NCBI GenBank assembly: GCA_025594325.1 | Contig: JANHCV010000012.1 | Coordinates: 868,001 to 932,000, forward strand | DNA length: 64,000 nt | From: Blastocladiella emersonii ATCC 22665 | Lineage: Eukaryota; Fungi; Blastocladiomycota | Direction of reading: 5' to 3' | Part shown: positions 4,427 to 42,931 of the stretch, one piece after another | Layout of the letters: every line of letters begins with the position of its first letter | Numbering within the stretch: the stretch's first letter is position 1 | The notes under the pieces: model-generated | What the model was told of the DNA's origin: nothing | Databases searched by the model: none | Seen by the model: only the letters and a program-made list of their open reading frames with translations | Position numbers and translations under genes: made by a program

Positions 4427-7400
4427 ATGTTCGCCGCGTCGCCGCTGCGCCGCCGCTGCCGCCGAGTCCGCTGCGCGCTGGTCGCGACTCTCATCTTGTT
4501 ATGTCTCCTCCTGACGCTCGACCTTGTCACCGCCGAGGATGTGATCCGGATCAGCGTGAGTACCACTAGACCCTGCAACACTGCACGAAGCTGACGCCCA
4601 CGCCGAGCGTAGCTGGTCGCCCCGATGCGCGACGAGGCGCTGGTGCACGAGAACCACGCGGCAGCCGACGCGCTGCGGTACGCGGTGCGCGACGCGCAGG
4701 CCGCGGGGTACCTCGCGGGCGCGCGCGTCGACGTGGTCGTCACCGACACGACGCCGGTGTCGGGCACGAAGAGCGGCGGTGGGACGGCCATCTTTGGTGC
4801 CCTGGGTACGCCATCCACTCCCCCCTCACCACACCCCACCTAACTCTCGCTGCCGCGTAGAGGCCCTGCAGAACAACGCGTCAGCGATCGTGACGAGCAC
4901 GTCCGAGGACAGCAAGCAGGTGTCGCTGGTGACGGCGCCGCTGCACGTCCCCGTGTGCTCGTACCTGGCCTCGGCCGCCGAGCTCTCCGACAAGCGCCTG
5001 TACCCGCACTTTTTCCGCTACATGACGTCGTCCGAGACGCTCGAGCACGCCCTGTTCCGGTGGTGCCGCGCCTACGGCTGGGCACGCGTCGGGATCGTGT
5101 TTGACGGGACGGACTGGTTTATGGGCGGGCGTACGTTTTACGGTGTGCACTGCTTGGGCGTGGACTGACCCGAGACACTTTGTAGTGGGCGCCGCGATCC
5201 AGGCACACGCCGCCGACGAAGGCGTCGCGCTGACCGCGGCCGTGAACGTGCAGGGCGAGGACCCGTCCCCGTCAACCCTCGCCGTCGCGTACAACGCGCT
5301 GGTCGCGGGGGACACGTACATCCTGTGCCTCGCGCAGTCCCCGCGCGGCGCCGCACGGACACTCGCGTCGCTGTGGTCGCGCGGCTGGTTCAACTCTACG
5401 CAACCGCGCGTCGTCTTCACGTACTTTTCCCCGCTCGACGAGCTGCGCGCCGCGGACCCCGCCGCGTACACGGGGATCTTGGGGAGTTCGACGACCCTGC
5501 TCCCCTCGACGTGGGTGTTTGACGAGGTGACCATCTGGTACCGGTTCCTGACCGAGTTTTTCGGGAGGACGGGGCAGCGGTACCCGCACGACGCCGCGTT
5601 CCTGTTCGCCAACGCGTACGCGTGCGGCGTGTCGCTCGCCGTCGGCCTGCACCGGCTCGCCGAGCGGGCTGGGTCAACGGCGGCGGTCGCGCACCGCGTG
5701 CCCGCGGTGTTTGAAAAGTACGTCGCGTTCGACCTGTTCAACATCACGCCCGCCGGCGCGCCGGGGATCGCGTACCCGCTGCCGTGGCTCGACGCGCACG
5801 GCGACGTGGTCCCGTCCGTCTTCACGCTGTTCGCGCTCAACACGTCCGTCCCCGCCAACTTCTCGGGCGTGCCCGCGACGGACCCGCCGGCCTGGTACTT
5901 TTGGCTGTGCGGCGGCATCTTTGCCAACGGGACCACGGACCGCCGCGACTGCGCGTTCCCCGGGGGAACCATCCCGCTCGACGCGACGCGCAAGGAACTC
6001 ACGAACCTGGTCTGGTCCTCGCTCCGCGGCCGCCTCGTCGAATCCTTCGCCTGTCTCGCCGCAATCGTCACGCTCGCGTCGCTCGCCGCCACCGTCGCCC
6101 TGCGGAGACACCCGCCGTACACCCGGGCGTCGCTCACCACGCTCGTCGTCCTGCACGTCCAGGCGCTCGCGGCCATTGGGGCGGCGGTCCTGTTCGGCGA
6201 CCCGCCGTCCGCGGTCATGTGTAACGTCCGCCTCGTGTTCCTGACGTGCGTGCCATGCGGGCTCATTGCCGCGGCGGCGCCACGGATCGTCATGATCCAC
6301 CGCGTCTACCGGTATTATCTCGCCACGGTCGTCAAGCCCGCGGCCGCGGCCGCCGCGGCGGGTGGAGGCGGAGGGCGGGGTGGGAGAATCAAGCGCAGCC
6401 GGTTCCTGACCAACGGGTCCGCCGGGTCCGGTGCTTCGAGTAGCGGCGGGGGTGGGACCGTCCCGCGCGCACGCACGCTCAGTTCCATGTCCGCGGTCCT
6501 CGCGGGCGGCGGCGGGGCGCTGCGCAAGAGTATGGGGAATCTCGCCCGCGGGATCTCGTCGCACTCGCTCAACCTGCTCGGCCGCACCGCCGCGCCCGAT
6601 GTGACGCCAGTGACGGTCCCGCTGACCAACTCCGAGGAGACGACGCCGTCCGCGACCGCATCCAGGGAATCGAAGCGCGACGCCCCCGCGGCGACGGTAT
6701 CCCGGACCGTCGTCGCGTACGCGCAGATGCTCGACGGCTCGCGCCCGCAGTCCATGTCGCTCGCGACCCTCGCCACGCTCGCAGGTCTCGCGGTCCCTTA
6801 CACCGCCGCCGGCGCGTACTACGTCCTGGCGTGCGACGCGTCCGTGGTCCGCATCACGCGTTCGGTCTCGAGCTACAGCCTCGTCTGCCAGTGCCGCTCG
6901 CCCAACGACGCGTACGCAGCGACGCTCACGGGCGTGTTCGCGTTCCACGCGCTCGCGCTCGTGTTTTTGGGAGTCCGCGCCGCGCAGGCGTGGGACGCGC
7001 GGTTCAATCTCAACGAGACGCGCCGGTGGACGTTCGCCCTCGCGAACGCGACGCTCGCGGGGGTGCTCGCTACGGTCGTGATCCTGGCCGATGCGGTGTC
7101 CAGGTTTACCGGGTTCTTTATCTGCCTCATCGTCTACGCCGCGCTCACGTCGGTTGTGGGCGTGGCGGGACCGCTGCACACCAGGTGGTACCGCCAGCGC
7201 GCGCGGGCGCGGCGCGGGAGTGTCGGGCGGGTGGCGGACGAGGACGGAGATGGCGAGCTCGTTAACCGGATCGCGGGCCTGCGTGTACGCGCGGACCTCG
7301 CGGCGGTCGCTCGCGCGCGCGCGGCGTCGGGACGGGTCAAGCTGAACGAGCCAGCGCCGCCGCCGCCGGCTCCGCCGGTCATCGCGATCCCCGCGGCCAA

Positions 7401-8115
7401 ACCAGCAGCTGCGCCACCGCCGCCACCCGCGACCGCGGAACCTGACCCCGAGCCCGTCGCGACCGTCGCGCGCCACGTCACCCTCGCCCTCCCGCCGACC
7501 AACCCGCGCGCGGCGGGGACGGGGACCGCGCCGCGCGGGAGCATCTTCTACGCGTCGCCGATGCACCGGCGGCGGTCCGCGCTGTCGGGGCCCAGCAGCA
7601 ACCCGGCCGCGGCCACGCCGCCGTTGTCCCTCATGACGCTCCTGCGCCGGTCGTCTGCGATGCCTCCGCCCGCCTCGACCGCCGCGCTCCCGCTGCAGTC
7701 CGCAGCGGCGACTGCGTCGGCCGCGAGCTGGGAGGAGGTCGCTGAGGTCGACTACCTGACGGCGCGGTACCCCGTGCGCTTGGTCTGCACGTCGCTGTTT
7801 TCGCAAGAAGAAGAGGAGGAGGACGGCGCGTTGTGGTGTCTCCTGGAAGAAGACCCGACGGCATCCGCAAGGCAGGGTTATCTCGTGGTCCTGCGCGGCG
7901 GGGCGTGCGACGCGCAGTGGGCGCTCTCTGGCCCGCTGCGCTCGTTCGAGGTCAGCAACGCGGGCGACTGTGTCGTGGTGGTGCGCGGGCGGTGGTCGCG
8001 GCGGTCCGCGACGGCGGTCTTTGCGACCCCGGAAGCGGCGGCCGAGTTTGCGCGGCTGTTCCCTGCCGCGAGCGAGGGCGGGAGCGGGAGGGGCGCGTTG
8101 ATGAGCTTCATATAA
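4427..8115 (+). CDS. Class C (GABA-B/mGluR-like) GPCR: signal peptide, Venus-flytrap domain, 7TM, long C-tail; introns 4556..4612, 4806..4860, 5131..5185
   Basis: ANF-receptor-like motifs (VPVCSYLASAAELSDKRLYPHFFR, YGWARVGIVFD) and 7tm_3-like motifs (RRHPPYTRAS after TM1, C.VRLVFL in TM3, FNLNETRRW before TM6). Three canonical introns join the frames. Confidence 0.8.
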
Positions 8116-8132
8116 CCCGTTCATTATATAAC

Positions 8133-9937
8133 TCAATCCCAGCCGGTCAGGACACCCGCGCCGGGCCCAGGCGCCGACGCGAACACGTACTTGTCGAGCA
8201 TCGACTCGGGCGACGCGACGCCGCGCGGCTCGTAGTAGTCGACGAACAGGCGGCCGACGAACTCGGGCACCTCGCGCGCGTCCGCCAACAGGTGCACGGT
8301 GCACCCGCCCCACCCGGCGCCCGTCAGCCGCGACCCGAGCGCGCCCGCGCGCTTGCCGACCCACACCAGCATGTCGAGCTCCGTGTGGCTGCACTCGTAC
8401 GGGTCCGTGCACGACGCGTGGCTCGCGTCCATGAGTTTCCCGAACGCCGCCGCCGGGTCTTTGGTGGATGTGAGCAGGTCCGCGGCGTCGAGGACGCGCA
8501 GCGCCTCCGACAGGACGTGCCGCGTCCGGGCGCCGAGCCGCAGCGCGTGGAATGTGACGGGGAACGCGGCCAGGTACCGGGTCCGGATCTCGTCGCGCGA
8601 CACCTCGAGCGCCGCCACGACTTCGTCGAGCGACCACTCGCCAAACTCGCCGCGGTTCCCGTGGAACAGAAGCGTCTCGGCCTGCTCGGCCAGCGCGCGG
8701 ATCGCTGCGGCGACGTCGCCCAGCGACTCGCAGGTCGCCCACGGGACCAGGTCCGCCAGCACCACGGGCCGCGGGTTTCCGTGCAGGTCCGGCACCGTCA
8801 GCGGCAGGTCCGCGTCCTTGGCCAGCAGCGCCGCCGCCAGACGCGTCTCGACGACGCGCAGGTTGTAGTTGCGCGGCGCCGTCACGTGCTTGTCGGCCGT
8901 CACCATCGAGTGCGCCACCACGAACACGCCCGCGGCGGGGAGCGGGAGCGGGTCGGCGCGGAGGGAGGGCGTGAAGTGCACCACGGCGGCCGCGCCGCGC
9001 TGGCCCATGACGGAAATCGACTGGTCCTACGTTCGTTGCGGGGCTGGTCAGTGAGTCGTCCGCGACGGTGCGCGCGAAGCAAAAGTACCATGCCGCCCGA
9101 GTTGACGCCGACGAGCCGCTCCGACTCGATCGCGATATTCGTGATCTTCTCGAGCGGGACGGTCCGGGCGCGCGCCGGGTTCGCCGCGTACAGCGTGGCG
9201 ATCACGGTCGCCACGATCATGGCCGACGAGCTCGATAACCCCGATCCGGCGGGCACCGTCGAGTGGATGCAGCAGAACAGGTCGTACGCGGGCTCCGGCA
9301 GCGCGAGCTGCGCGTACACGCCCTTGTACCCGGCCTTGAAGTAGTTGCCCCAGTCGAGCACCGCCGCGTCGATCGTGCAGATCCGCCCGCGGTTGTGGTC
9401 GTGGTCGAAATCGACCGCCGTCGGGTACCCCGCCGAACGCACGTGCACGCGCGGCTTCCTCGCGCCGTTGGTCCCCGAGGGGATCGGCCGCTTCGCGACG
9501 GCGATCAGCAGGTCCCGGTCAATCGCCATCGGCATCACCGCGAACCCCGCGTAGTCGATGTGCTCGCCGATCAGGTTCACGCGGCCCGGCGCCCGCGCGA
9601 TGAAGGCGGGGCGGCCGACGCCCGGGAATGCGGTTTCGAATGCCGCGACGAGCTCGGCGACGCGGCCGCGCTGCGCGTGCGTCCCCGAAGCGTACAGCGT
9701 CTCGAGGTCCGGGTAGATGGGCAGCGTGCGACCGGGGCTCGCGAGCGCCGCGTCCGCATCGTGGTCGGGTTTCGCAGCGAGACTCTGCGCCGAGGCGCGC
9801 GCGGGCGTGTGCGGGTGCGAAGACGACGAAGAGTGTGTGGCGAGCTCGTCGACCGAATCGGCGAGGAACCGGCTCGTCGAGCCCTTGACGTTGGTATCGG
9901 CGCTCGACTCGGACATGTTCGTTGAGGCTGCGAGCAT
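8133..9937 (-). CDS. GAL1: Galactokinase (GHMP kinase); intron 9027..9088; start may be 9916
   Basis: RAPGRVNLIGEHIDY, PAGSGLSSSSA, SGGMDQ after splicing, GSRLTGAGWGGC. Confidence 0.95.
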
Positions 9938-14340: not shown

Positions 14341-16596
14341 ATGACGGCTACCATGGATCCTACCGCGCAGAAACCGGCTGCAACGCCCGCTGCGGCGCCA
14401 TCGGCCAAGCCCGGCAAGGCGAAGAAGCGCCCGGCCAAGCACGGCGACATCGTGCCCGCGACCGGCGGCGGCGCCGCTGCGGCGGCAAAGCGTCCGCGCA
14501 AGGCGCTGACGGGTGCCAAGGCCGAGGCGGTGGCCGCGGCGAGCACGCCCGTGTCGGCGGAGCAGGCGTCCGCGCTCAAGAAGACCAAGGAGTCGCTGCT
14601 CAAGGTGCGCAAGACGCTGCCCGTGTACGAGCACCGCGAGTCGATTGTGGACGCGGTGCGCAAGCACGCCGTCGTCGTGGTCGTGGGCGAGACGGGGTCG
14701 GGCAAGACGACGCAGATCCCGCAGTTCCTGCACTCCGCGGGCGTGTGCAAGTCGGTCGCGGTGACGCAGCCGCGCCGGATCTCGGCCATCTCGCTCGCGC
14801 AGCGCGTCGCGCAGGAGCAGGGCGTGCAGCTCGGCACGCGTGTCGGGTACTCGGTCCGGTTCGACGACATGACGTCCAATGAAACTAAGATCCGGTTCCT
14901 CACCGACGGCATGCTCCTGCGCGAGCTGCTCGTCGACCCGATGCTGTACAAGTACGACGCCATTGTACTCGACGAGGCCCACGAGCGCAGCGTCCGCACC
15001 GACGTGCTGCTCGGCATGGTCCGCCGCATCCTCGCCGTGCGCAAGGACCTCAAGGTCGTGGTCATGTCGGCGACGCTCGAGTCGGGCCTGTTCACCAACT
15101 TCTTCCAGGGGTACGCTTTCTCGCACTCATCACCGTTTACTGGACGCAAGCTGACGTTGCGACCGAGTAGCGCGCACCTGCTGCACATCCCGGGCCGCCT
15201 GCACGAGATCCGCGTGTTCCACACCATCGCGTCCAACACCGACTACGTGGACGCGACGCTGCGCACGATCCACGACATCTACCACAACCAGGCGCCCGGC
15301 GACATTCTGGCGTTCATGAACGGGCAGGAGGACATTGAGGCGGCCGCCGCGCAGCTGACCGAGCACGCCAAGGCCATGCCGAACCTGGTCGTCGCCCCGC
15401 TGTTCGCGAACTTGCCCATGTCGATGCAGCGGTCCGTCTTCGACCCCGCCCCCGCGGGCCACCGCAAGGTGGTGCTGGCGACCAACATTGCCGAAACGTC
15501 CGTGACGATTTCGGGCGTGCGGTACGTGGTCGACAACGGGCTGGCCAAGATCAAGGTGTACCACGCCAAGGTCGGGCTCGAGTCGCTCATGGTGGCGCCC
15601 ATCTCCAAGTCGGCGGCGCTGCAGCGCGCGGGCCGTGCGGGCCGCGAGGCGCCCGGCCGCGTGTACCGCCTGTACACGGAGGACGCGTTCGCGGGGCTCG
15701 ACCCGAACACGCCGGCCGAGATCAAGCGGGCGAACCTGGCCAACGTGGTGCTGCAGCTCAAGGCGTCGGGCGTCGAGGACGTGCTCGGGTTCGACTTCAT
15801 CGAGCGCCCGCTGCAGGAGTCGCTGGTCGCGGCGCACCAGCAGCTGGTGCTGCTGGGCGCGCTCGAGAAGGCGACACGCGCGCTGACGAGTACGGGCCGC
15901 AGCATGGCGCGGTACCCGCTCGACCCGGCGGTCGCGCGCGTGCTGGTGGCGGCCGAGGCCGAGGGCGTGACGGTTGACCTGCTCTCGCTCCTGGCGCTGC
16001 TGTCGCAGGAGACGGTCTTCTACACGCCGTCGGGCGACGCGCGCGACGACGCGCTCGAGCAGCGGCGCAAGTTCATTTCGAGCGACGGCGACCTGGTGAC
16101 GTGGCTCAACGCGCTGCGCGCGTACGAGGAGGTGCAGGGCGACGACAAATGGTGCCACGCGCACTACATCAACCAGCGCAACGTGCGCCAGGTGCTGAGC
16201 ATCCGCAACCAGCTCGCCGACCAGGTTCGGGGGACGGCGACGACGCTGTCGACGCGCACCGCGCCCACCGAGGACCTGCTCCGGTGCTACCTCCGCGGGT
16301 ACTTTGGCCAGGTCGCGTTCCTCCAACCCGACGGCCGGTACGCGACGCTCGCGGGCCGCCACGCCGTGTCGATCCACCCGTCCAGCGTCCTGTTCGGTAA
16401 GAAGATCCCCGTCGTGTCATTTGTCGAGCTCGTCGGCGGCGAGTCCGGCCGCTGGTTCATTCGCGGCGTGAGTCGCGTCGACCAGGAGTGGGTCAAGGAG
16501 GCCAGCGCCGCCGTGCTCGGCGAGGCCCGCCGGGCTGCTTCGTCCGCGACTGCCTCGGCGGCGAAGACGACGGCGACCGTCGCGGCTAGAGGATAG
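14341..16596 (+). CDS. DEAH-box RNA helicase, Dhr2/DHX33-like; in-frame intron 15111..15170
   Basis: GETGSGKTTQ, TQPRRISA, DEAHER, MSAT, LATNIAETSVTI, QRAGRAGR, followed by HA2- and OB-like regions. Subfamily assignment is less certain than family. Confidence 0.92.
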   Translation: MTATMDPTAQKPAATPAAAPSAKPGKAKKRPAKHGDIVPATGGGAAAAAKRPRKALTGAKAEAVAAASTPVSAEQASALKKTKESLLKVRKTLPVYEHRESIVDAVRKHAVVVVVGETGSGKTTQIPQFLHSAGVCKSVAVTQPRRISAISLAQRVAQEQGVQLGTRVGYSVRFDDMTSNETKIRFLTDGMLLRELLVDPMLYKYDAIVLDEAHERSVRTDVLLGMVRRILAVRKDLKVVVMSATLESGLFTNFFQGYAFSHSSPFTGRKLTLRPSSAHLLHIPGRLHEIRVFHTIASNTDYVDATLRTIHDIYHNQAPGDILAFMNGQEDIEAAAAQLTEHAKAMPNLVVAPLFANLPMSMQRSVFDPAPAGHRKVVLATNIAETSVTISGVRYVVDNGLAKIKVYHAKVGLESLMVAPISKSAALQRAGRAGREAPGRVYRLYTEDAFAGLDPNTPAEIKRANLANVVLQLKASGVEDVLGFDFIERPLQESLVAAHQQLVLLGALEKATRALTSTGRSMARYPLDPAVARVLVAAEAEGVTVDLLSLLALLSQETVFYTPSGDARDDALEQRRKFISSDGDLVTWLNALRAYEEVQGDDKWCHAHYINQRNVRQVLSIRNQLADQVRGTATTLSTRTAPTEDLLRCYLRGYFGQVAFLQPDGRYATLAGRHAVSIHPSSVLFGKKIPVVSFVELVGGESGRWFIRGVSRVDQEWVKEASAAVLGEARRAASSATASAAKTTATVAARG

Positions 16597-16770
16597 ATAC
16601 GAATACACTATTCAGCCTCGCAGATTTGATACGACTCTGATCCCCAACACGCGAGTGGCCGACAGAGACGTGTTGATCAAAACGGCGCGCCGACCACGTC
16701 CCCTTTCTCTCTCCCCACGAATGATCGGCCGCTCATAGGCCCTCACATACACTCGCTGCAACGCATCAAG

Positions 16771-19023
16771 ATGGGCCACCTCGCCGTCGTCGCGACGTGC
16801 TCGCTTAACCAGTGGGCGCTCGACTTCGACGGGAACCTTTCGCGGATCCGCCGCTCGCTCGACGTCGCCCTCGAGCAGCACGCAACGCTGCGCATCGGGC
16901 CCGAGCTCGAGATCACCGGCTACGGGTGCAACGACCACTTTCTCGAGGGCGACACGTACCTGCACGCGTGGCAGGTGCTGGTCGAGCTGCTGCAGCACCC
17001 GGCGTGTGCCGGTGGGGAGATGCTGTGCGACTTCGGCATGCCCGTCAAGCACCGCGGCGTCAACTACAACTGCCGCGTGCTCGTGCACTCTGGAAAGATC
17101 GTGCTGATCCGGCCCAAGCTGCTCATGGCCAACGACGGCAACTACCGCGAGATGCGCTGGTTCACGCCGTGGATGCAGCCGCGCACGACCGAGGACCACG
17201 TTTTGCCGCGCATGGTCGCCGCGGCGACGGGGCAGCACACGGTCCCGTTCGGCGACGCGGTCGTCGCGACGCGCGATACCGTCGTCGGCGTCGAGATGTG
17301 CGAGGAGGTGTTCGCCGCGGACTCGCCGCACGTCGCCATGGCGCTCGACGGCGTCGAGGTGTTCACCAACTCGTCGGGGTCGCACCACGAGCTGCGCAAG
17401 CTCGCCACGCGGCTCGACCTCGTGCGCGGCGCCACCCGAAAATGCGGCGGCGTCTACCTGTACGCCAACCAGCAGGGGTGCGACGGCGAGCGCATCTACT
17501 ACGACGGCAGCGCGCTCGTTGCCGTCAACGGCGACGTGGTCGCGCTCGGGTCCCAGTTCTCCCTGAAAGACGTCGAGGTCGTCACCGCCGTCGTCGACCT
17601 CGAGGACGTGCGCTCGTTCCGCTCCGGCCGCATCTCGTCCAACCTCCAGGCCGCCGCCGCACCGCGCTACCCGCGCGTTCACGTCGACGTCGCCCTGTCG
17701 CGGTCCGTCTGGGACACGGCCCTGCCCAACCCAGCGCACCCGGACGCCACCGCTGCGCCGCGCCGTGCGGTCGCCGCCCCGCCGACCGGCCCGCTCCTGC
17801 TCCGCCCGTCGCGCCCGTTCGAGCCTGCCGTGTGCGCGTCAGAGGAGGAGATCGCGCTCGGCCCCGCGTGCTGGCTGTGGGACTACCTGCGCCGGTCGCG
17901 CGTCCAGGGCTACTTTTTGCCGCTGTCCGGCGGCATCGACTCGTGCGCGACCGCCGTCATCGTCTTCTCCATGTGCCGCCTCGTCCACGCCGCCGTCGTC
18001 GCAGGCGACGAGCACACGCCGCAGGTGCTCGCGGACGTGCGCCGGATCGCTGGCGAGCCCGTTGATTCGGACTGGGTCCCCGCGTCGCCCGAGGAGATTT
18101 GTGGGAGGTTGTTCCACACGTGCTACCTGTCGGCCGAGCACTCGTCGGCCGAGACGCGCGGGCGCGCGGCGGGTCTGGCGGCTGCGATCGGCGCGTACCA
18201 CCTCAACGTGCCCATCGACTCGATCACGCGCGCGCTGGTCGCGACCTTCGCGGCGGTGACGGGCAAGACGCCGCAGTTCCGCGTGCACGGAGGGTCGAGC
18301 GCCGAGAACCTGGCGCTGCAGAACATCCAGGCGCGGTCGCGCATGGTGCTCAGCTACCTGTTCGCGCAGCTGCTGTGCTGGGTGCGCGGGCGCACCGGCA
18401 GCCTGCTGGTGCTCGGGTCCGCCAACGTCGACGAGTCCCTGCGCGGGTACCTGACCAAGTACGACTGCTCGTCGGCGGACCTCAACCCGATCGGCGGGAT
18501 CTCGAAGACGGACCTCCGCGCCTTCATCGCGTGGGCGCAGCGGGAGTTCGAGCTCCCGGTCCTCACCGGGTTCCTCGACGCGACGCCGACGGCCGAACTC
18601 GAGCCGTCGACCGCCGACTACGTCCAGGCGGATGAAGTCGACATGGGCATGACGTACGCCGAGCTGTCCGTGTACGGCCGCCTGCGCAAGGTCGCCAAGT
18701 GCGGGCCCTTCTCCATGTTCACGGCGCTCGTGCGCGAGTGGGCGCCGCGGCTCCCGGCCGCCGAGGTCGCCGCCAAGGTCAAGCGCTTCTTCTTCTTCTA
18801 CAACATCAACCGCCACAAGATGACCACGCTCACGCCCGCGTACCACGCCGAGAGCTATGGCACTGACGATAACCGGTTCGACCTCCGCCCGTTCCTCTAC
18901 CCCGGCATGCAGTGGCAGTTTGCGCGGATCGACGACGCGGTCCGCGCTATCGACGCGGCGTCTTCGGCGGCGGGGGCGGCGGGGGTGGCGGACGCGGGGC
19001 TCGCGGTGCCGATGGTTGATTGA
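16771..19023 (+). CDS. QNS1: Glutamine-dependent NAD+ synthetase
   Basis: Nitrilase-type domain ([16 protein letters not shown]) plus synthetase domain ([46 protein letters not shown]). Confidence 0.97.
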
Positions 19024-19120: not shown

Positions 19121-19538
19121 TCAGGCGATGCGAGCGCCGCCAATCATGTTGTTCTCCACGACAATCTCGTCCTGGTCGCCAATATCGAGCTAGTTCGCGC
19201 GGGTGCGCGAGGCGGCGGTCAGCATGGCGCGGCGAGCCAGGAGAACCCCGACTACAACGCACCTCAATGAGCGACGACTCGAGCTCCTCCTTCAACCGCT
19301 CGCCGTCAGGGCTGAGGAAGCGGAACGTCTTGGCCACTGCGCCCTTCCGCGCGTTGAAGGCGGCCGTGAGCTTGGCGAACTTGGTCTTACCCTTGGCCTT
19401 GAACTCTGAGAGATGGATGAGTCGCCGAAGCGGTAAGCGGGCGGGCAGCGGCGGAGGGGGAGGGAGCGTCGTACCAATGCGCTCCTCGGCGCCGGGACCC
19501 TTGAACACGATCGTCACCACGTCGTTCTCGGCAGTCAT
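19121..19538 (-). CDS. SUMO-like ubiquitin-fold protein A (91 aa; ends MIGG-ARIA); introns 19406..19474 and 19190..19262
   Basis: Spliced product MTAENDVVTIVFKGPGAEERIEFKAKGKTKFAKLTAAFNARKGAVAKTFRFLSPDGERLKEELESSLIELDIGDQDEIVVENNMIGGARIA follows the Smt3 pattern FK.K..T...KL..AF..R.G.....RFL.DG.R....LD..D.D.I......GG. Confidence 0.85.
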
Positions 19539-19583
19539 GGTTTCTGCATGCACGGCGGTCGGGGAGTGGAGGTGTGAGCGCTC

Positions 19584-19625
19584 GATACATTGCAGCAAGT
19601 GCCGGGTTACATGGAGTGTTACATT
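19584..19625 (-). promoter_or_regulatory. Conserved 42-bp upstream element of SUMO-like gene A
   Basis: Bipartite AATGTAAC...ACTTGCTGCAATGTATC element with the same length and spacing as before genes B, C and D. Confidence 0.65.
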
Positions 19626-19893
19626 TTAGTGTAAGTGTCGTGGAAGGGGGGAGAAGAAGCGGAAGCGCAAGGGTGGCTCAGTTCAGCTGAGTTGCCATCG
19701 ACCCCTGACCGACTGCCATCTGGTCGGCCATCACGCTGGCCATCGGACAGACCCCTCACGCGACAACAGACTAGTATTATGGTATATGCAATCGAACCAC
19801 GGGTCGGCCACGACGGGTCGCGGCGAAAGCGAGTCGGACCAGACTTCCGGCCGCGGAACCAAGGTGTCGTCGTGCCATGGCCAGCAGCAAGGC

Positions 19894-20305
19894 CTACTCG
19901 TCAACAGCGCCACCCTCCTGGCTGAGATGCACCGCAACCTCGTCCATGTCACGGATATCGAGCTACATTCAACGTCGCGGGAGGTCAGCGAGCGGTCCCA
20001 TCGCCACACGTCGACACGGTCGGCGCACCTCCTTGAGCGTCTGCTCGGCCGTCGCCTTGAGTTTCTGGCCAAGCGGGTCAAAGAAGCGGTACGTCTTCGG
20101 TCCCACATCGCGCTTCTTCATCACGGCGGTCGCGAGCTTGCAGAACGGCGTCTTGGCCTTGGCCTTAATCTCTGTTCGAGCGAGTGTGAGCGGGTTGCTG
20201 AGAAGCTGCTTGTGAGATGGGCGACGTACCGAGCCGGTTCTCGGGGCCGGGGCCGTTGAAGACGACCGTCACCACCGAGTTGTCGTCGAGTTCGCCGTTG
20301 GTCAT
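19894..20305 (-). CDS. SUMO-like protein B (ends QEGG-AVDE); two introns at the same positions as A
   Basis: MTNGELDDNSVVTVVFNGPGPENRLEIKAKAKTPFCKLATAVMKKRDVGPKTYRFFDPLGQKLKATAEQTLKELDIRDMDEVAVHLSQEGGAVDE; canonical GT-AG introns. Confidence 0.82.
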
Positions 20306-20356
20306 GGTGGCTGAGTGCGCGGGATACACGGATAGCGAGTAGGCGTGAGCTTAGTC

Positions 20357-20398
20357 GATTCGTTGCAGCAAGTCTCGGCATTCATGGTGCGTTACATT
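20357..20398 (-). promoter_or_regulatory. Conserved 42-bp upstream element of SUMO-like gene B
   Basis: Plus-strand GATTCGTTGCAGCAAGT...CATGGTGCGTTACATT, 52 bp upstream of the ATG. Confidence 0.65.
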
Positions 20399-20653
20399 TC
20401 GAGACTTTGTGTTGTGTAGGGAGAGGAGAGATGAGTGCATGGTCCTTCAGATGCGAATTGGCCATCGCCGCGACCACCAGCCATCTGGGCGGCCATCACC
20501 CACTCCGACGGCTCGCGCAACACGGAGAAACTGCGCCAGAGACGTGACCAAACCCTCTAGTACGCGCAGCAAAAGAATGGGCGCGAGAACGCGTCCAAGC
20601 GGGATTTATAACACTCGGCGTGACCGCGATGGGGCGTGCGAGCCAAACCAGAG

Positions 20654-21073
20654 TTAAAACGCGAGCGCACCGCCGTCCTGGTTGTGCACGACAGTGATCT
20701 CGTCATTATCGCCAATGTCGAGCCAGATGCGGAAAGGTTGAGGGTAAGTATCGGCGGGACGGGCACAACTCGCGCTCTACGCACCTCGGCCAGCGACGCC
20801 GTGCTGTCCTCCTTGAGGCGGTCTCCGTCCGGGCCGAGGAAACGGAACGTCTTGGGCACCACGCCACGCTTGGCGTTGAAGTTGGCCGTGAGCTTGCAGA
20901 ACTTGGTCTTGAGCTTGATATTGTGCACTGCGGGTTGGGGCGAACAGTCAAGGCACTGCACCGACCGAGTCGCGTTCTGTTGGCAGATTGATGGGCGTAC
21001 CCATACGGTCCTCGGGGCCGGGGCCCTTGAGCACGACGGTGATCAGGTTGAGCTTGGGCTCGGTCGTCGTCAT
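20654..21073 (-). CDS. SUMO-like protein C (ends QDGG-ALAF); second intron acceptor reads GG, so possibly a pseudogene
   Basis: MTTTEPKLNLITVVLKGPGPEDRMVHNIKLKTKFCKLTANFNAKRGVVPKTFRFLGPDGDRLKEDSTASLAE/LDIGDNDEITVVHNQDGGALAF. The acceptor at 20724..20723 is GG, not AG. Confidence 0.72.
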
Positions 21074-21125
21074 GGGTATCGATTTGCTAAGTGCGGGGTC
21101 TACGGGAGTGCTGTGTGAGCTTTTT

Positions 21126-21167
21126 GATACATTTCAGCAAGTTCCAGTTGAAATGGTGCGTTACATT
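21126..21167 (-). promoter_or_regulatory. Conserved 42-bp upstream element of SUMO-like gene C
   Basis: Plus-strand GATACATTTCAGCAAGT...AATGGTGCGTTACATT, 53 bp upstream of the ATG. Confidence 0.65.
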
Positions 21168-21417
21168 GAGAGAGGGGTGTCGCGTTCGGAAGGCGGGATG
21201 GGTCGCGACGTTCACTTCGACTCCCAGCTCCACTGACGCCACCGCTCGCCACCAGCGGAAGCTTAACGCTCTCGACGCAATGACCAGTTTCAACCGTTTT
21301 TATACGCTCAGCGTTAACCGTTTCGGCCCGCTGCTTAGCCGTATTCAACAGCAGCCCTGTCGCCAAGTATCCGACCCATCACATCGGGACACAGCTGCAT
21401 AGACCAGGCGAAAGATC

Positions 21418-21850
21418 TCACGCAACGTGAGCGCCGCCGTCCTGGTGGATCCCGATAGAGATCACGTCCATGTCGCCGATCTCGAGCTAGATGGTGGGCG
21501 GGGGAGCGGTGAGCACGGGCGTCGCGATGTGGCGGCGACCCAGCCAGAGCGAGAGCGACGTACCTCCATCACGGAAGTCTCCGACTTCGCGTTGAGCATC
21601 TTGCCGTCCGGGTCCGCGAACCTGTAGGTTCCGGGGGCCACGTCGCGCTTCTTCATGACGGCGTTCGCGAGTTTGCAGAACGGCGTCTTACCCTTGACCT
21701 TGATCTCTACCCGAACGAGCTACCAAGCTAAGCGGTACGCGACGAGAGAGGATCCGAGAGGCGTCGTGTGGTACCGAGACGGTCCTCGTCGCCGGGTCCC
21801 TTGAACACCACCGTGATCACTGTGTTCGCGTCGACCTCGCCGTTGGTCAT
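21418..21850 (-). CDS. SUMO-like protein D (ends QDGG-AHVA); two introns at the same positions
   Basis: MTNGEVDANTVITVVFKGPGDEDRLEIKVKGKTPFCKLANAVMKKRDVAPGTYRFADPDGKMLNAKSETSVMELEIGDMDVISIGIHQDGGAHVA; canonical splice sites. Confidence 0.82.
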
Positions 21851-21901
21851 GTTGGCTGAGCAAGCGGGATACACGGCCAGCAGTCAGGTGTGAGCACACT
21901 G

Positions 21902-21943
21902 GATACATTGCAGCAAGTCTTAAGTTTCATGGTGCGTTACATT
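21902..21943 (-). promoter_or_regulatory. Conserved 42-bp upstream element of SUMO-like gene D
   Basis: Plus-strand GATACATTGCAGCAAGT...CATGGTGCGTTACATT, 52 bp upstream of the ATG. Confidence 0.65.
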
Positions 21944-22437
21944 GAGCGTGAGAAAGCGCGTTCGGAGAGCGCGGGGCGGGAGACGCGGTGACTCGAAACT
22001 TGGCCAGTGCGGCTCGGTCAGCCGTCGGGGCGCGGCGCGCCGTGCCCATCACTCCGGACATCGCTCGTCGATGGCAACGAATACGGCCCTCGTCAGTATC
22101 TCTCTATAAACAGCCGGTCGGCAGTCGGCAGAATTAGTCTACCAGCGGGGCCAAGATGTAACTGCGCCTGTTTGTCTGCAGCGACGCGCTCACCACGCGT
22201 TGCGCGCCCCCCTGACTATCTCAAACTGTGATCGTGGCCACAGCACTGCTTTGTGAGCGCCAAGGCTGATCGGTTGCGCTGAACGCATCCCATGAGCAGC
22301 CGCTGCCCCTGGTCCGTGCTCAGATTGAAGTAAAGAGCGAAGAAGACTCTGATCGGTACGCGTTTGGCCGCCAGGTACACGAGCGTTGCAAGAGTTGCTA
22401 GCAAAACAAGGTGCATTCGTTGAGCGGCTTATTGATC

Positions 22438-23159
22438 CTAGCCGCACATGTATAATTCGAGATACACTTTGTGCGTGCCCGTGAACCCAAGCTACTACTT
22501 GTGTTAGTACGCGTTGTAAATTGCCCAATGCACCGTTTGCGTACCTCTCCCAGCGACTTGTCAGAATCTTCGGAAATGCGGCGGCCATCTTCGCTGTCAA
22601 TGAACTTGAAAATCCGTGGTCCGACGCCTCGTTTTTGACATAGTGCAGCTGTAAGCTTGCAAAATGGGGTGCTCGCCATGGCTTTGATCTCTGACAAAGA
22701 TGGAAGGGTCGCGTGAGTGGGGCAGGAAGCGGAGATTCCTGCACGCAGACGCGTACCCTGAACTTGGTCCGACTGAGGCCCGATGAACTTGACAGTAATC
22801 AGCTCGATGACACTGCTCTGTGCAGGATTTTTTGAGGCTGCCTTCGCAGCGGCCTCTGCAGCGGCTTTTGCGGCGGCCTCGGCGGCGGCCTTTTTCTCAG
22901 CCTCGATTTCCTCCCACAGCGGGTCCTTCTTGACCGCCTCAACGAGGTGGCGTAGAACGGCGGTATCCGGGTCAAGCTCCAGGAGCGGCTCGAGCGATTC
23001 CAGGAGGGACCCCTGCTTGAGCAAGAGCGTCTCTTGCTTCTGGACAGTGTCGCAGAGCCCACGGATCTCCTCTTGCTGGGTCATCAGGAGTGCATAAATT
23101 TTTGAGCATGTAGCCTCGAGGCCACGGATCCGGTCGGTAGTTTGCATGGAGTCTGACAT
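22438..23159 (-). CDS. Coiled-coil plus SUMO-like-domain protein E (no di-Gly; ends LELYMCG); introns 22691..22756 and 22492..22544
   Basis: N-terminal heptad/EAAAK-rich helix, then LITVKFIGPQSDQVQEIKAMASTPFCKLTAALCQKRGVGPRIFKFIDSEDGRRISEDSDKSLGE/LGFTGTHKVYLELYMCG. Intron positions match A-D. Confidence 0.75.
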
Positions 23160-23640
23160 GTTTTCGAGAGAGTTGTCAAGGTTGCGGGAGAGAGGAGATG
23201 GAGCGGGCGCGAGCTCGAGCTCGGCACCGCATGGCGCAAGCGGCTTGCGTTGCTCGCGTGACCCTCAACCACGCGCGGCAACGGCGCATCAGTTTGCGGA
23301 TCACGGATGCACACGACGCAGACGACCTTTCGCTTGAACCAAGGTTCTTTATATCTCAAGGATTTTCAGAGCGCGAGAACACGGATCGAAAGCGTGGGAA
23401 TAACGTTGAATAGTCAAGACCGCGACGATTCAGCTCGCTCAGAGGCAAAGAAATCCGCGGCTGCTGCACATTTCAAGCAACGTAGCGAGCTTCGACCCTA
23501 ATCACGTGCATGCCCATGATCTTAAGCTAATTGCCAGTACCTCCACCACTCACTCCGTTCGGGTGTCAACTGTGCGGGGCTTTGCCCAAGTGCCCTCTCG
23601 CCGCGACATCGGGAAATGGGGGGTCACCCCGCTGCGGTGG

Positions 23641-23797
23641 ATCACGAAGATCTTCCTAGATCACTGTGATCTACGAAGATCTTAGCCCTGCGGAAATCTA
23701 GCCCCGCTCGACCAGTCTGGAGTGGTTCCGCTCGCGAAGATCTTGTCACCCGACATAGATCTACGAGTAATCTATGGTGCTCGACCACAAATCTAGG
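23641..23797. repeat. AGATCT/GATC motif cluster 1
   Basis: Four perfect AGATCT (23648, 23677, 23738, 23757; three as GAAGATCTT) plus near matches (AGATCA, TGATCT, AAATCT, TAATCT) within ~150 bp. Confidence 0.8.
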
Positions 23798-24409
23798 AAT
23801 GAGTCGAGCGCTTGCACTCGCGCAGCGAACGACTTTGAGACAAAGCTCGCGCGGCGCGTCCTTGACTCTCAAATCACAACACCGATCATCGCTCCCTTTG
23901 TCCTCCATAGTCGCGTTTGGAATTAATCAAGCAGTTCACTGGACTATCTCTCAGTCGTGCATCAGCGCGTCGCACAGGCGGGCCGGGAGAACCGTGGTTC
24001 AAGTGAGCAAACAGGGAGCACCACACATGCAGCGTGACCAACGAAGTGGGAAGGGAAGAGGGCCAGGGGCATCGATTCCCTCGAGGCGGTGTGCAGGATC
24101 GGCGTCAAGGAACGTGAAAATGGAGCTGTTGAAGAGCTGTACGGGCACGACAGGGATCAAGGTTGCGGGTGCCTGCCAGTGTGCCTTCAAGCGGGAGCGA
24201 GGTCGTAAGCGGGCGTGATCACGACGTCGTGGAGCCGCCAACAACCTTGCAGGACGGATCAGCGAGTTCCGGCTCGCGCATCTCACCACGTAGCAGGTCG
24301 GGCAGAGCAGCGACGGCCAGGATCCGCAGCTGTTTCGAGATCGTTCGACCACGGAACCACGCGGTGAGGGAGTTGCAGCGTGTCAGTAATGAGATCTTCA
24401 GACCTGCGT

Positions 24410-32260: not shown

Positions 32261-34186
32261 ATTGAGCGGCGGCCCGCGGGTCGGCTAGGACAGCGAATTT
32301 GCAACCAATTGACGTTCAATCTGCTGCGACTTGATGGCACATTTGATGGCCAATGTGTGAGACGAGCGACCCGGTTGGCGCACGAATTGTTGGCAAATTT
32401 ACACGATGGGGACTGCGTTTTGGTGCAAATTTGCGAGTGTATTGCGTACAGGGAGATATCAGATACAGGTCAGAGCGCCACCGCCGCGGGTCGCGCGGCA
32501 TGCGAGTCGGAATCCCGGCCCGCGCGCGACGACGATGCACGACAAGTAGGTACCCGAGCGGACCGCAGACGCCGTCGCCAGCACCAAGTCTCCGCACTCG
32601 GAGCCGCCGTCCGTGACCCGAACCGCGTGCGCGTCGCACTTGCTGCGATCCGCGGTCAGGTCGCGCCACGACTCCGAGTACAGAAACCGGCTGGGCGAGA
32701 TAGTGGTCAGAGATCGCTGCTACAAGCAAGAAAGGTCCGAGAGCTCATGTGAGTCGCGCTGCGCCTCGGGCGGCGTGTGACGAGGGCGTACCAAGTCGTC
32801 TTAGGAATCGGCACCCTACAGCTTGCGGATCTTGCTCGTCAGATGGGCCATCGAGAGGTGGCGGGTTGATGGTGCAGCGAGAGACCAGTGGTTCACGAGG
32901 GGCTACGAGGAGCAATGTGAGCGAGCATGTCAGTCGCGCGCCAACTCCTGCGTAGCGACGAGAAGAGTCAAGCGTACCTGCGACTGGGACTTGGCCCACG
33001 TGGTGGGCGCGGCCGAACCGCTTGAGCGAGCCTGTCGGCGCTACTGGCGCGAGCGTGCAGCGTGAGTGCATGAGACACGCGGAGGTGGTGTGGCGGAGAC
33101 GGCGTACCGTCGCGAGCGAGGCTGGCTTGATGGTCTCAGGTCCATGAGTCGCCAAATGTCGAGTCCCTGGTGGTGGACGCGCGCCGGCGGCTACGTGGGC
33201 ACCGCACAGGTGTCAGCACCTTTGATGAGCGCGCACGCGGCTGGTAGCCCGGTGGGGTCCACCTGCGCTGCGCCGTGCCGCACCCGAAGTATGAGCGCGG
33301 GGGAGCGCGCGCACGACGGCGCGCACGCGTAGCGGCGACGACGCCGCTGGTCTCACGGTGCGTCGACCGTGGAGCGAGCAGTGGATGACGCGCACCACGC
33401 CGGGCACACCGCTCCGAAACCGCAACACGACGGTCGGCGCGATGGGAGCCAAGCGCGCGGCGGCGGGCGCGGCAGCGGGATGTGACGCGTACCTGTTGAC
33501 GGTGGCCGCATGAATGCCGTGCGTCGAGGTCGCAGTGTGCTTCGTTGTCGGATGGGTGATACATTGCAGCGAGTGGTGATGAGTGAGGGAGCGGGGACCG
33601 CGCGCGGCGTGGCGAAGAGTCACTCGCTCGGCCGACGCGCGCTCGCGCTCAAGTCCACGCCAAGCTGTGTCACGTGCGCGTGACTGACACGTGGTTTTGC
33701 GACGCGTCTCGCACCCCGTCTCGCAATCCGCCGTGCCACGACTCTCGCTCAGTTTCGCTAGCCTTGCAACGCGCGGTTAAAAAAAAAGTTATACTTGAGG
33801 CACCTAGACGCCTCGCGTCTGGTTTTCAATCGAGGGCTAAAGCCCGCGCCACGTTGGGCGCTTGCGCCGTGCGGGGGCCCTTCCGCTTGATCCGTGAGTA
33901 GGCGCTCGTTGAACGAGTCCTTTGCATCACTCCTACTGCGGTGCTTGACGGAGTGGTCGCAGCACAGCGCGCCGCAGCACAGCACGTCGCCCTGCTGCGC
34001 GATGCGCGCGCTTCAACGGAGGGCGGTGTGGCTGGTCGCTCGCGTGGAGTGACGACAGGGCACCGTCATTAGTCACTGGCGCGGCATCAGCGTTCGCGTT
34101 GCAGCGCGGGTGCCAAGCACGCTCCCGCACAGCGCTCGAGGTGATTGCCGTCGCATCAGGAAGTGCAAGGCGCGGTATCGGGAGCC

Positions 34187-41675: not shown

Positions 41676-42931
41676 AGAGTTGATTCATTCAAATTCGTAT
41701 GTTGCATGCGTCTCGGGCTCAAGGCAGGGAGCGAAAAGCGTGGGACACGCGTTCGGCGAACCAGGGGGGCTAAGTGCTGCGGCGAACCAGGGGTTCTGGG
41801 CTGAGCGTCGCGTCCCGTTTCACTTTCGCGTGATGGTGCGCGCTGTCGTGACACTTGTCGCTGCCCGCAGCCCTCTCGCTTCCCCTCCATCGCACACTCT
41901 CCATGTAACCGACTCAAGGCTTGCTGCAATGTATACTCGCGCCCACTTTATGCATCCTTGCTGAGCCGCCCGGCGTCCGGCTGACGGCTGCCGATCCCGT
42001 AGCCCGGCGGTTGAGCCCGAACAGCAGCCCTGTGTCGGCGAGCGGCATCTTGCTCGATTGGCTTGATCGGAATCGCTGCATTTGGTTTATTTTGCGCGAT
42101 GATATCGCGGTGATGACGCCGACTTGGTGAGTGAGGCGTGCAATCAGATTTACAAGCACTCCCCGATGGTACGTCTCGGGCCGCTCCTCCCCGTCGCGGC
42201 CCCGTTGGGTACTTACCCGACCAATGGCCGAGTAGCTTATTCGGGCGAAGTGTAAGTGAATGTCCTCGCTGGCACCGCACTCGAGCAGCTAATCCTCGTG
42301 CTCCGCGTCATCTTGCGCGACGTTGATGACGAAGGCCTTGATTAACGCATCAGCAAGTCGGGTCACTGCGCAGCCGCCGTGGAACTGATTGTCGGACCTC
42401 GACCGCTTCCCTGGGAATCGACTGAATGAACCGCTCAACTCACAGCACATCCGCCGCGCAGCTGGAGCAGTAGTCGGGCAACACGTGGAGTGTTCAGAAC
42501 TCTAGCGGTCCTCGTGCCTCAAGATCGGTTTAGATTCGCCGCATCCCGCCCAGGGTTAGGAGTAGCCCGTAAGGCGGGGGAAAAGAATGGACGATGGAGA
42601 CGACTGGCCACTCCTCGTCGTTGGTCTCACGCACGCGGCGGCAGCCTCCTCGCACTCGGATTTGACTCGAGCAAGCGCAGGACGCGCGCGAGCGGCGTGA
42701 AAGCAGCGCGTCGCTCGCGCGCGTGCTGTGGGTGCGCTGGGTCGCGCTCAGTCGTGTTGTGTGAGTTGTCGCCGCGTCAACTGCCACGTCGTAGTCCAGA
42801 ATACATCTCGCTGCTTGCAATCGAGTAAAGTGGAGCAAAATGGGGATGTGTCTGTTTATCTCTGCGATCGATCGAGAGCGCCAACTGAGGGTGGGATATT
42901 TTGTACAGGAAGAGCGGGAGGGAACCCGAGC

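Follow-up and report, generated by a model that had tools for sequence, protein, structure and literature searches.

A GC-rich 64,000-nucleotide (nt) stretch of the genome of the fungus Blastocladiella emersonii ATCC 22665 (assembly GCA_025594325.1, contig JANHCV010000012.1, positions 868,001–932,000; hereafter the window, whose numbering is used unless another locus is named) carries on its minus strand a tandem array of SUMO (small ubiquitin-like modifier) genes, designated A to E, at positions 19121–23159. B. emersonii is an early-diverging, flagellated, water mould-like fungus that is now being developed as a model. Genes A–D are SUMO-family beta-grasp genes with a SUMO-aligned di-glycine (GG) motif and a short tail and, judged by their sequences, are far more divergent than ordinary SUMO. 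We read the array as a set of old, highly divergent tandem SUMO paralogues, of which A, B, D, and until recently C would be trimmed and conjugated as SUMO isoforms, and we put the probability of this reading at about 0.55.

Gene models of the array

Models of A–D were obtained directly from the sequence by splicing the reverse strand at GT..AG sites. They share a plan of three exons, with an exon 2 of 143 nt and an exon 3 of 69 nt in all four genes, and have introns of 58–77 nt with GTRCG-type donors; intron 1 is in phase 1 and intron 2 in phase 0, at identical positions in every array copy. Gene A (19121..19538; exons 19538–19475, 19405–19263, and 19189–19121) encodes 91 aa ending in IGG-ARIA and corresponds to GenBank H9P43_008765. 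The products of gene B (19894..20305; exons 20305–20230, 20171–20029, and 19962–19894) and gene D (21418..21850; exons 21850–21775, 21706–21564, and 21486–21418) are both 95 aa long and end in EGG-AVDE and DGG-AHVA, respectively, the spliced model of D being identical to the GenBank protein H9P43_008767. Gene C (20654..21073; exons 21073–21001, 20927–20785, and 20722–20654) would encode 94 aa ending in DGG-ALAF if spliced like its paralogues. GG is thus followed by four residues, the first of them Ala, in four of four genes. Gene E (22545..23159), which is unannotated, consists of exon 1 (23159–22757, 403 nt) and exon 2 (22690–22545) and is SUMO-like and GG-less.

The encoded proteins share several motifs. 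GPGxExR is found at the beta1–beta2 turn in A–D, the Cys of F-C-K-L in B, C, D, and E (gene A has FAKL instead), one additional residue preceding DG in the array copies, and an acidic residue preceding GG in B–D. The N-termini of A–D, as read from the sequence, are very short and without the consensus chain-forming lysine motif, so that these proteins, if conjugated, would not form canonical chains. The models bear out what a sequence-only reading of this stretch had described, namely two conserved introns, products of about 91–95 aa, Ala-led four-residue tails after GG, and all of the motifs named above except the chain-forming lysine, which it had not mentioned. Its count of five genes holds in part: four intron-split SUMO-like genes and a fifth copy exist, but only three are clean, the acceptor of C being broken and E lacking a last exon.

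Family assignment and predicted fold

Against the Pfam family Rad60-SLD (PF11976; cut-off 23.8 bits), A scored 24.7 bits, D 22.4 bits, and the GenBank model that joins C and B 38.7 bits, compared with 50.1 bits for the annotated SUMO of Blastocladiella britannica (P0046), which agrees with the strong divergence from canonical SUMO that had been proposed. A family profile built from the five array copies matched only SUMO2/3, SUMO1, and Smt3 in the PDB (E 1.6e-8 to 1e-6; positions 4–92; GG on GG), and no ubiquitin or NEDD8 chain was among its 60 best PDB sequence matches. The AlphaFold model of D (predicted local distance difference test score 77) is a beta-grasp with the order bb-a-b-b and a disordered tail. 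The top 30 PDB matches of this model in Foldseek were all SUMO/Smt3, including Smt3 fusion proteins, with template-modelling scores normalized by target of 0.79–0.89 for stand-alone SUMO chains. Profile search and Foldseek therefore both returned SUMO/Smt3, as the earlier proposal of an Smt3-type beta-grasp had anticipated.

A HMMER scan of 1.84 billion representatives gave single-domain scores above 100 bits only in B. emersonii proteins; the next-best single-domain scores (≤57 bits) came from ordinary SUMOs of many eukaryotes. Together, the profile, fold, and HMMER results place the array genes genuinely within the SUMO family, albeit in strongly derived form. Dinoflagellate and metagenomic proteins of 1000–2700 aa were discarded, since they owed their high rank to scores summed over repeats and their best single domains fell below those of ordinary SUMOs. 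P0148, in which an N-terminal SUMO is joined to an ion channel, was dropped as a candidate because it came from another assembly. Look-alikes in the ESM Atlas were only generic ubiquitin-like clusters, and a word-based homologue search matched only the genome's own A and D. Ubiquitin or NEDD8 identity was ruled out, since neither A nor D had a significant match to PF00240 (ubiquitin) and the tails of A–D are xxIGG, xQEGG, or xQDGG and not of the LRLRGG type.

Constraint and a common upstream element

The introns of the paralogues resembled each other no more than shuffled sequences do, which indicates that neutral sites are saturated. Despite this saturation of introns and synonymous sites, the array paralogues retain a protein identity of 47–62%, their exon lengths, splice sites, GG, and tail, which argues for constraint. 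A pairwise codon model (F3x4) gave omega values of 0.10 (A–C), 0.14 (C–D), and 0.016 (A–D), with twice the log-likelihood difference from omega = 1 amounting to 21–36. The array genes have thus been under purifying selection. In A, B, and D the reading frames are intact, the splice sites canonical, and the exon lengths conserved, and the indirect evidence leads us to favour the view that these three genes are functional.

A 42-bp bipartite element (AATGTAAC..CATG, 9 nt, ACTTGCTGCAATGTATC) lies on the minus strand 46–94 nt 5′ of each ATG of A–D, with 0–2 mismatches per half, against a chance expectation of 0.09–0.26 matches per window. It is located at 19584..19625 upstream of A (46–87 nt before the ATG), at 20357..20398 upstream of B, at 21126..21167 upstream of C, and at 21902..21943 upstream of D. 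Its second half is also found 5′ of F, a pseudogene at a second locus described below. Near-copies of ACTTGCTGCAATGTATC with 1–3 mismatches occur in the window at 16751–16767 (+), 33558–33574 (−), and 41919–41935 (+), one of them 4 nt before the ATG of an NAD synthase gene, and this half may be a more general promoter or 5′-untranslated-region motif of this genome.

SUMO rows in relatives and a second locus

Five same-strand SUMO genes stand in a row in Allomyces javanicus (JADHYU010000001.1; L004:7379–11308); the first is N-extended, GG-less, and ends in DVTIM, and the other four have MIGG or QVGG followed by a short tail. In A. macrogynus a single contig carries at least two SUMO-family genes, separated by a few others. 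B. britannica (MU625069.1) has one annotated SUMO (P0046, ending in QIGG-SHFE), right downstream of which lie three unannotated SUMO-like copies (L003:6225–6988), one with two in-frame stops and two divergent. Of the two stop-free copies, one is truncated and the other ends in RLGG. The A. javanicus row and the B. britannica copies indicate that SUMO rows occur across the phylum Blastocladiomycota, and the B. emersonii array exemplifies a wider pattern of birth and death among such rows. The two introns of the B. emersonii genes, which precede EFK/EIK (intron 1) and LDI/LDL (intron 2), occupy exactly the positions that they have in the Allomyces SUMO genes, and B. britannica retains intron 1.

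A second B. emersonii locus (L002, on contig 4, JANHCV010000004.1) carries four further pieces of the family at 7754–9097, 14857–15500, and 398–538. Copy F is frameshifted and has its GG changed to AG; copy G is GG-less, and the annotated H9P43_004509 is a chimera of the F tail and G. Gene H combines a coiled-coil with a complete SUMO-like domain, but its third exon stops soon after the last strand and has no GG. The locus also holds a further fragment of the helical N-terminal domain that E and H have in common (M-S/T-DSMQT ... DTAVLRHLV ... DPLW; window 22757–23159 (−) and L002:14857–15150). This domain is 50% identical between E and H and has no Pfam match, and that of E contains an extra Ala/Lys/Glu-rich insert. 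That GG-less derivatives joined to a conserved helical domain have arisen repeatedly is unusual.

Phylogeny

In a maximum-likelihood tree of 48 rows and 98 columns, all eight B. emersonii copies formed one clade (support 99/97) on a stem of 0.96. Within it, A paired with C (98/85) and B with D (98/91), and the GG-less copies were arranged as (E,(G,H)). Taken with the gene order D-C-B-A, these pairs show that a two-gene cassette of a D-type and a C-type gene was duplicated. The clade did not group with the SUMOs of Allomyces, Catenaria, or B. britannica; however, a tree uniting all blastoclad sequences was not rejected (approximately unbiased test, p 0.17), nor, with it, a single origin. Its neighbours in the tree (94/89) were amoebozoan, green-algal, and metagenomic SUMOs with the same one-residue loop insertion. 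We read this sister grouping with scattered SUMOs as attraction of divergent sequences, because these taxa form no coherent group and the data do not reject blastoclad monophyly. A tblastx comparison of the B. britannica and Allomyces loci with the window found zero common neighbour genes. One-to-one orthology to canonical fungal Smt3 was rejected in view of the long stem, the lack of a sister grouping, and the differing flanking genes.

Unusually, two blastoclad genera have in common a layout of one GG-less, N-extended head copy and four GG copies, but the copies cluster by species, which points either to an old layout homogenised by gene conversion or to convergence. The sequence-only reading had proposed a lineage-specific family; a species-specific clade is what the tree recovered, but tandem SUMO arrays are also present in A. 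javanicus and decayed copies in B. britannica, so that B. emersonii is not alone in having arrays of this kind. Neither PMC7691676 nor the other literature retrieved describes SUMO rows in fungi, Blastocladiomycota included.

Genomic setting

The conserved flanks of the array contain genes for a DEAH helicase (14341–16596) and the NAD synthase (16771–19023). GC content is 0.57–0.60 at 20000–24000 versus 0.66–0.72 in the conserved flanks, and 0.57–0.73 over the window as a whole. None of the large open reading frames scanned between 24 and 35 kb had a Pfam match. A long open reading frame at 5101–8115 (+) gave a weak, sub-threshold match to 7tm_3 (class C G-protein-coupled receptors; 24 bits against a cut-off of 33.5).

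Annotation of the array and defects in genes C and E

In GenBank, A and D are hypothetical proteins, E is missing, and C and B are fused into a single 178-aa model (H9P43_008766), of which B is the second half. This model was reproduced exactly by use of a cryptic AG (20699–20700), which lies 24 nt into exon 3 of C, and then of a GTGCGC donor in the Gly-Gly codons of C, joining just before the ATG of B. The genome was annotated ab initio with funannotate, and RNA data are unmentioned (PMC9730499); we therefore read the C+B fusion as the predictor's bypass of a defect in C. Because the ab initio models overlook one gene and fuse two here, SUMO-family counts in such genomes are unreliable. Exon 1 of E encodes a helical N-domain of approximately 110 aa and the first two strands of the SUMO-like domain, and its exon 2 matches the other copies.

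Several observations weigh against the array being a set of working, conjugated SUMO paralogues. The intron-2 acceptor of gene C (20724–20723) is GG rather than AG, the intron ending in CTGG. Contigs across this site from three public DNA runs, all of the same sample, show no variant there, and the defect is genuinely present in the DNA. No third exon or GG of E was recognisable downstream, either by the family hidden Markov model or by alignment to the third exon of its paralogue H. The non-AG acceptor of C and the missing last exon of E indicate that the array is partly decaying. The GenBank models of the array are ab initio predictions (PMC9730499). Public run listings contained no RNA runs, the four runs found being genomic contigs of one sample. 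The low-GC setting likewise counts against function, as do the decayed copies elsewhere, with the frameshift and the lost GG at the second locus. Three of the six codon-model pairs failed to converge, with infinite synonymous distance, and Nei–Gojobori dN/dS values were 0.36–0.80. No Ulp, Ubc9, or E1 gene lies within the window, and the processing and conjugation proposed for the array proteins are deduced purely from the GG tail.

Some of these points can be read differently. The pairs at infinite synonymous distance indicate saturation, and the Nei–Gojobori values were set aside as inflated and unreliable on account of a GC content at third codon positions of 0.85–0.89 together with that saturation. 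In the dN/dS comparison called for by the sequence-only reading, usable values were thus the omega of 0.016–0.14 in three pairs. The frameshift and lost GG at the second locus also serve as a contrast, showing what decay looks like beside the intact A, B, and D.

Proposed mechanism and alternative explanations

Under the favoured reading, A, B, and D (and, until recently, C) would be synthesised in precursor form, and a protease of the Ulp/SENP type would cut them after GG. The trimmed proteins would then be attached to lysines via the SUMO E1/E2 route (activating enzyme Aos1/Uba2 and conjugating enzyme Ubc9) as alternative isoforms with changed surfaces. E, G, and H would be GG-less derivatives that are not conjugable.

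It is possible, though in our view unlikely, that the array comprises the organism's working SUMO genes, that is, that there is no separate canonical Smt3 and the SUMO machinery has co-evolved with the divergent forms. A word-based search with P0046 matched no B. emersonii protein, B. emersonii proteins among the 30 named matches of the HMMER scan were only members of the array family, and the canonical-looking SUMO genes of Allomyces sit in the row itself. However, the word-based search is insensitive below about 60% identity, ab initio annotation demonstrably overlooks or wrongly joins small genes of three exons in this stretch (E; C+B), and the scanned library holds one representative per 50% cluster, so that it may conceal a canonical copy. 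The long stem of the clade also fits released paralogues better than an essential gene with a single function.

The array proteins might instead be produced but left unconjugated, acting as free SUMO-like domains on partners with SUMO-interacting motifs or on SUMO enzymes, as decoys or regulators. Their surfaces have diverged strongly, their Pfam scores lie at the threshold, and the clade repeatedly gave rise to GG-less forms (E, G, and H) for which only non-covalent action is conceivable. B–D moreover have an acidic residue before GG where the canonical SUMOs compared have T, I, or V, but QEGG-type ends are also found in other presumed SUMOs, such as P0069 and P0064. A decoy would have no need of GG and a short tail, yet both are kept in four of four small genes despite saturation of neutral sites, and the decayed copy F lost its GG. 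We regard this alternative as distinctly improbable.

That the array is a non-functional remnant, with duplicated SUMO copies on their way to becoming pseudogenes within an accessory region of low GC content, would fit the broken acceptor of C and incomplete E, the frameshifted and truncated copies at the second locus, the decayed copies beside the B. britannica SUMO, the local GC content down to 0.57–0.60, and the finding of genomic runs alone in the public listings, but is hard to reconcile with the intact frames, canonical splice sites, and kept exon lengths of A, B, and D amid randomised introns, with omega well below 1 where estimable, and with a 42-bp non-coding element that is nearly unchanged before four of four genes, and we consider it very unlikely.

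The favoured reading, in which divergent paralogues are conjugated as isoforms, could be extended to a multi-isoform SUMO system, built from tandem gene rows, in B. emersonii and more broadly in Blastocladiomycota. In such a system A, B, and D would act on distinct targets, perhaps in a stage-specific manner via the 42-bp element, with dedicated proteases or ligases, and E and H would be non-covalent scaffolds. We hold this extension to be doubtful; if true, it would mean that the specialisation of SUMO paralogues was invented independently in fungi. In blastoclad SUMO rows the forms range from the near-canonical ones of Allomyces to the strongly derived ones of B. emersonii, with decayed copies and GG-less offshoots lying beside them. 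Should the derived copies be conjugated, they would constitute a natural experiment in SUMO isoform divergence in which the interface to E1, E2, and protease is kept, and a source of SUMO variants with altered surfaces.

Comparison with known systems

The array proteins resemble canonical SUMO/Smt3 (yeast Smt3, human SUMO1–3) in their beta-grasp, full-length profile homology, di-Gly with a short propeptide, T-P/K-F/L-x-K-L and R-F motifs, and basic beta2/alpha1 groove. They differ from canonical SUMO in a very short N-terminus that lacks the flexible tail with a consensus chain-forming lysine, in the GPGxExR turn, the FCKL Cys of most copies, the extra residue before DG, and the acidic pre-GG residue of B–D, as well as in their Pfam scores of 22–25 bits versus 50 bits for the B. 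britannica SUMO and their long separate branch.

Rad60, Esc2, and NIP45 are similar to E, G, and H in that a SUMO-like domain without di-Gly is part of a larger protein and its action is necessarily non-covalent. Unlike E (one incomplete domain) and H (one complete domain), they have two tandem C-terminal SUMO-like domains. The N-terminal helical domain of E and H has no Pfam match. The position of the E/H group inside the B. emersonii SUMO clade indicates that its members are recent derivatives and not Rad60 orthologues; for E, Rad60/Esc2/NIP45 identity was ruled out by this position together with its single incomplete SUMO-like domain.

Plant SUMO families likewise show lineage-specific multiplication, but arose independently and in another kingdom. 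Some plant SUMO genes are tandem duplicates, and some members of the family are divergent and weakly conjugated. Arabidopsis has eight SUMO genes, and SUMO multiplication has been discussed mainly for animals and plants, with multiplied families in plants and humans and a single SUMO in yeast, the main fungal model (PMC7691676).

The closest analogue of the array is the Allomyces row ("Small ubiquitin-modifier 1/3", AMAG_00446, AMAG_17673), which is from the same phylum and has five same-strand genes with identical intron positions. The E-led array also matches the A. javanicus layout, with a GG-less N-extended head copy followed by four GG-bearing copies. Copies in Allomyces look canonical, are 60–95% alike, and end in QVGG or MIGG, whereas those of B. 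emersonii are 47–62% alike and derived, and the two rows have no flanking genes in common. The array is thus an expansion of the known SUMO family rather than a new kind of system; what appears unusual, from the sequences compared here, is that the B. emersonii clade has diverged so strongly while its array copies A–D have retained GG.

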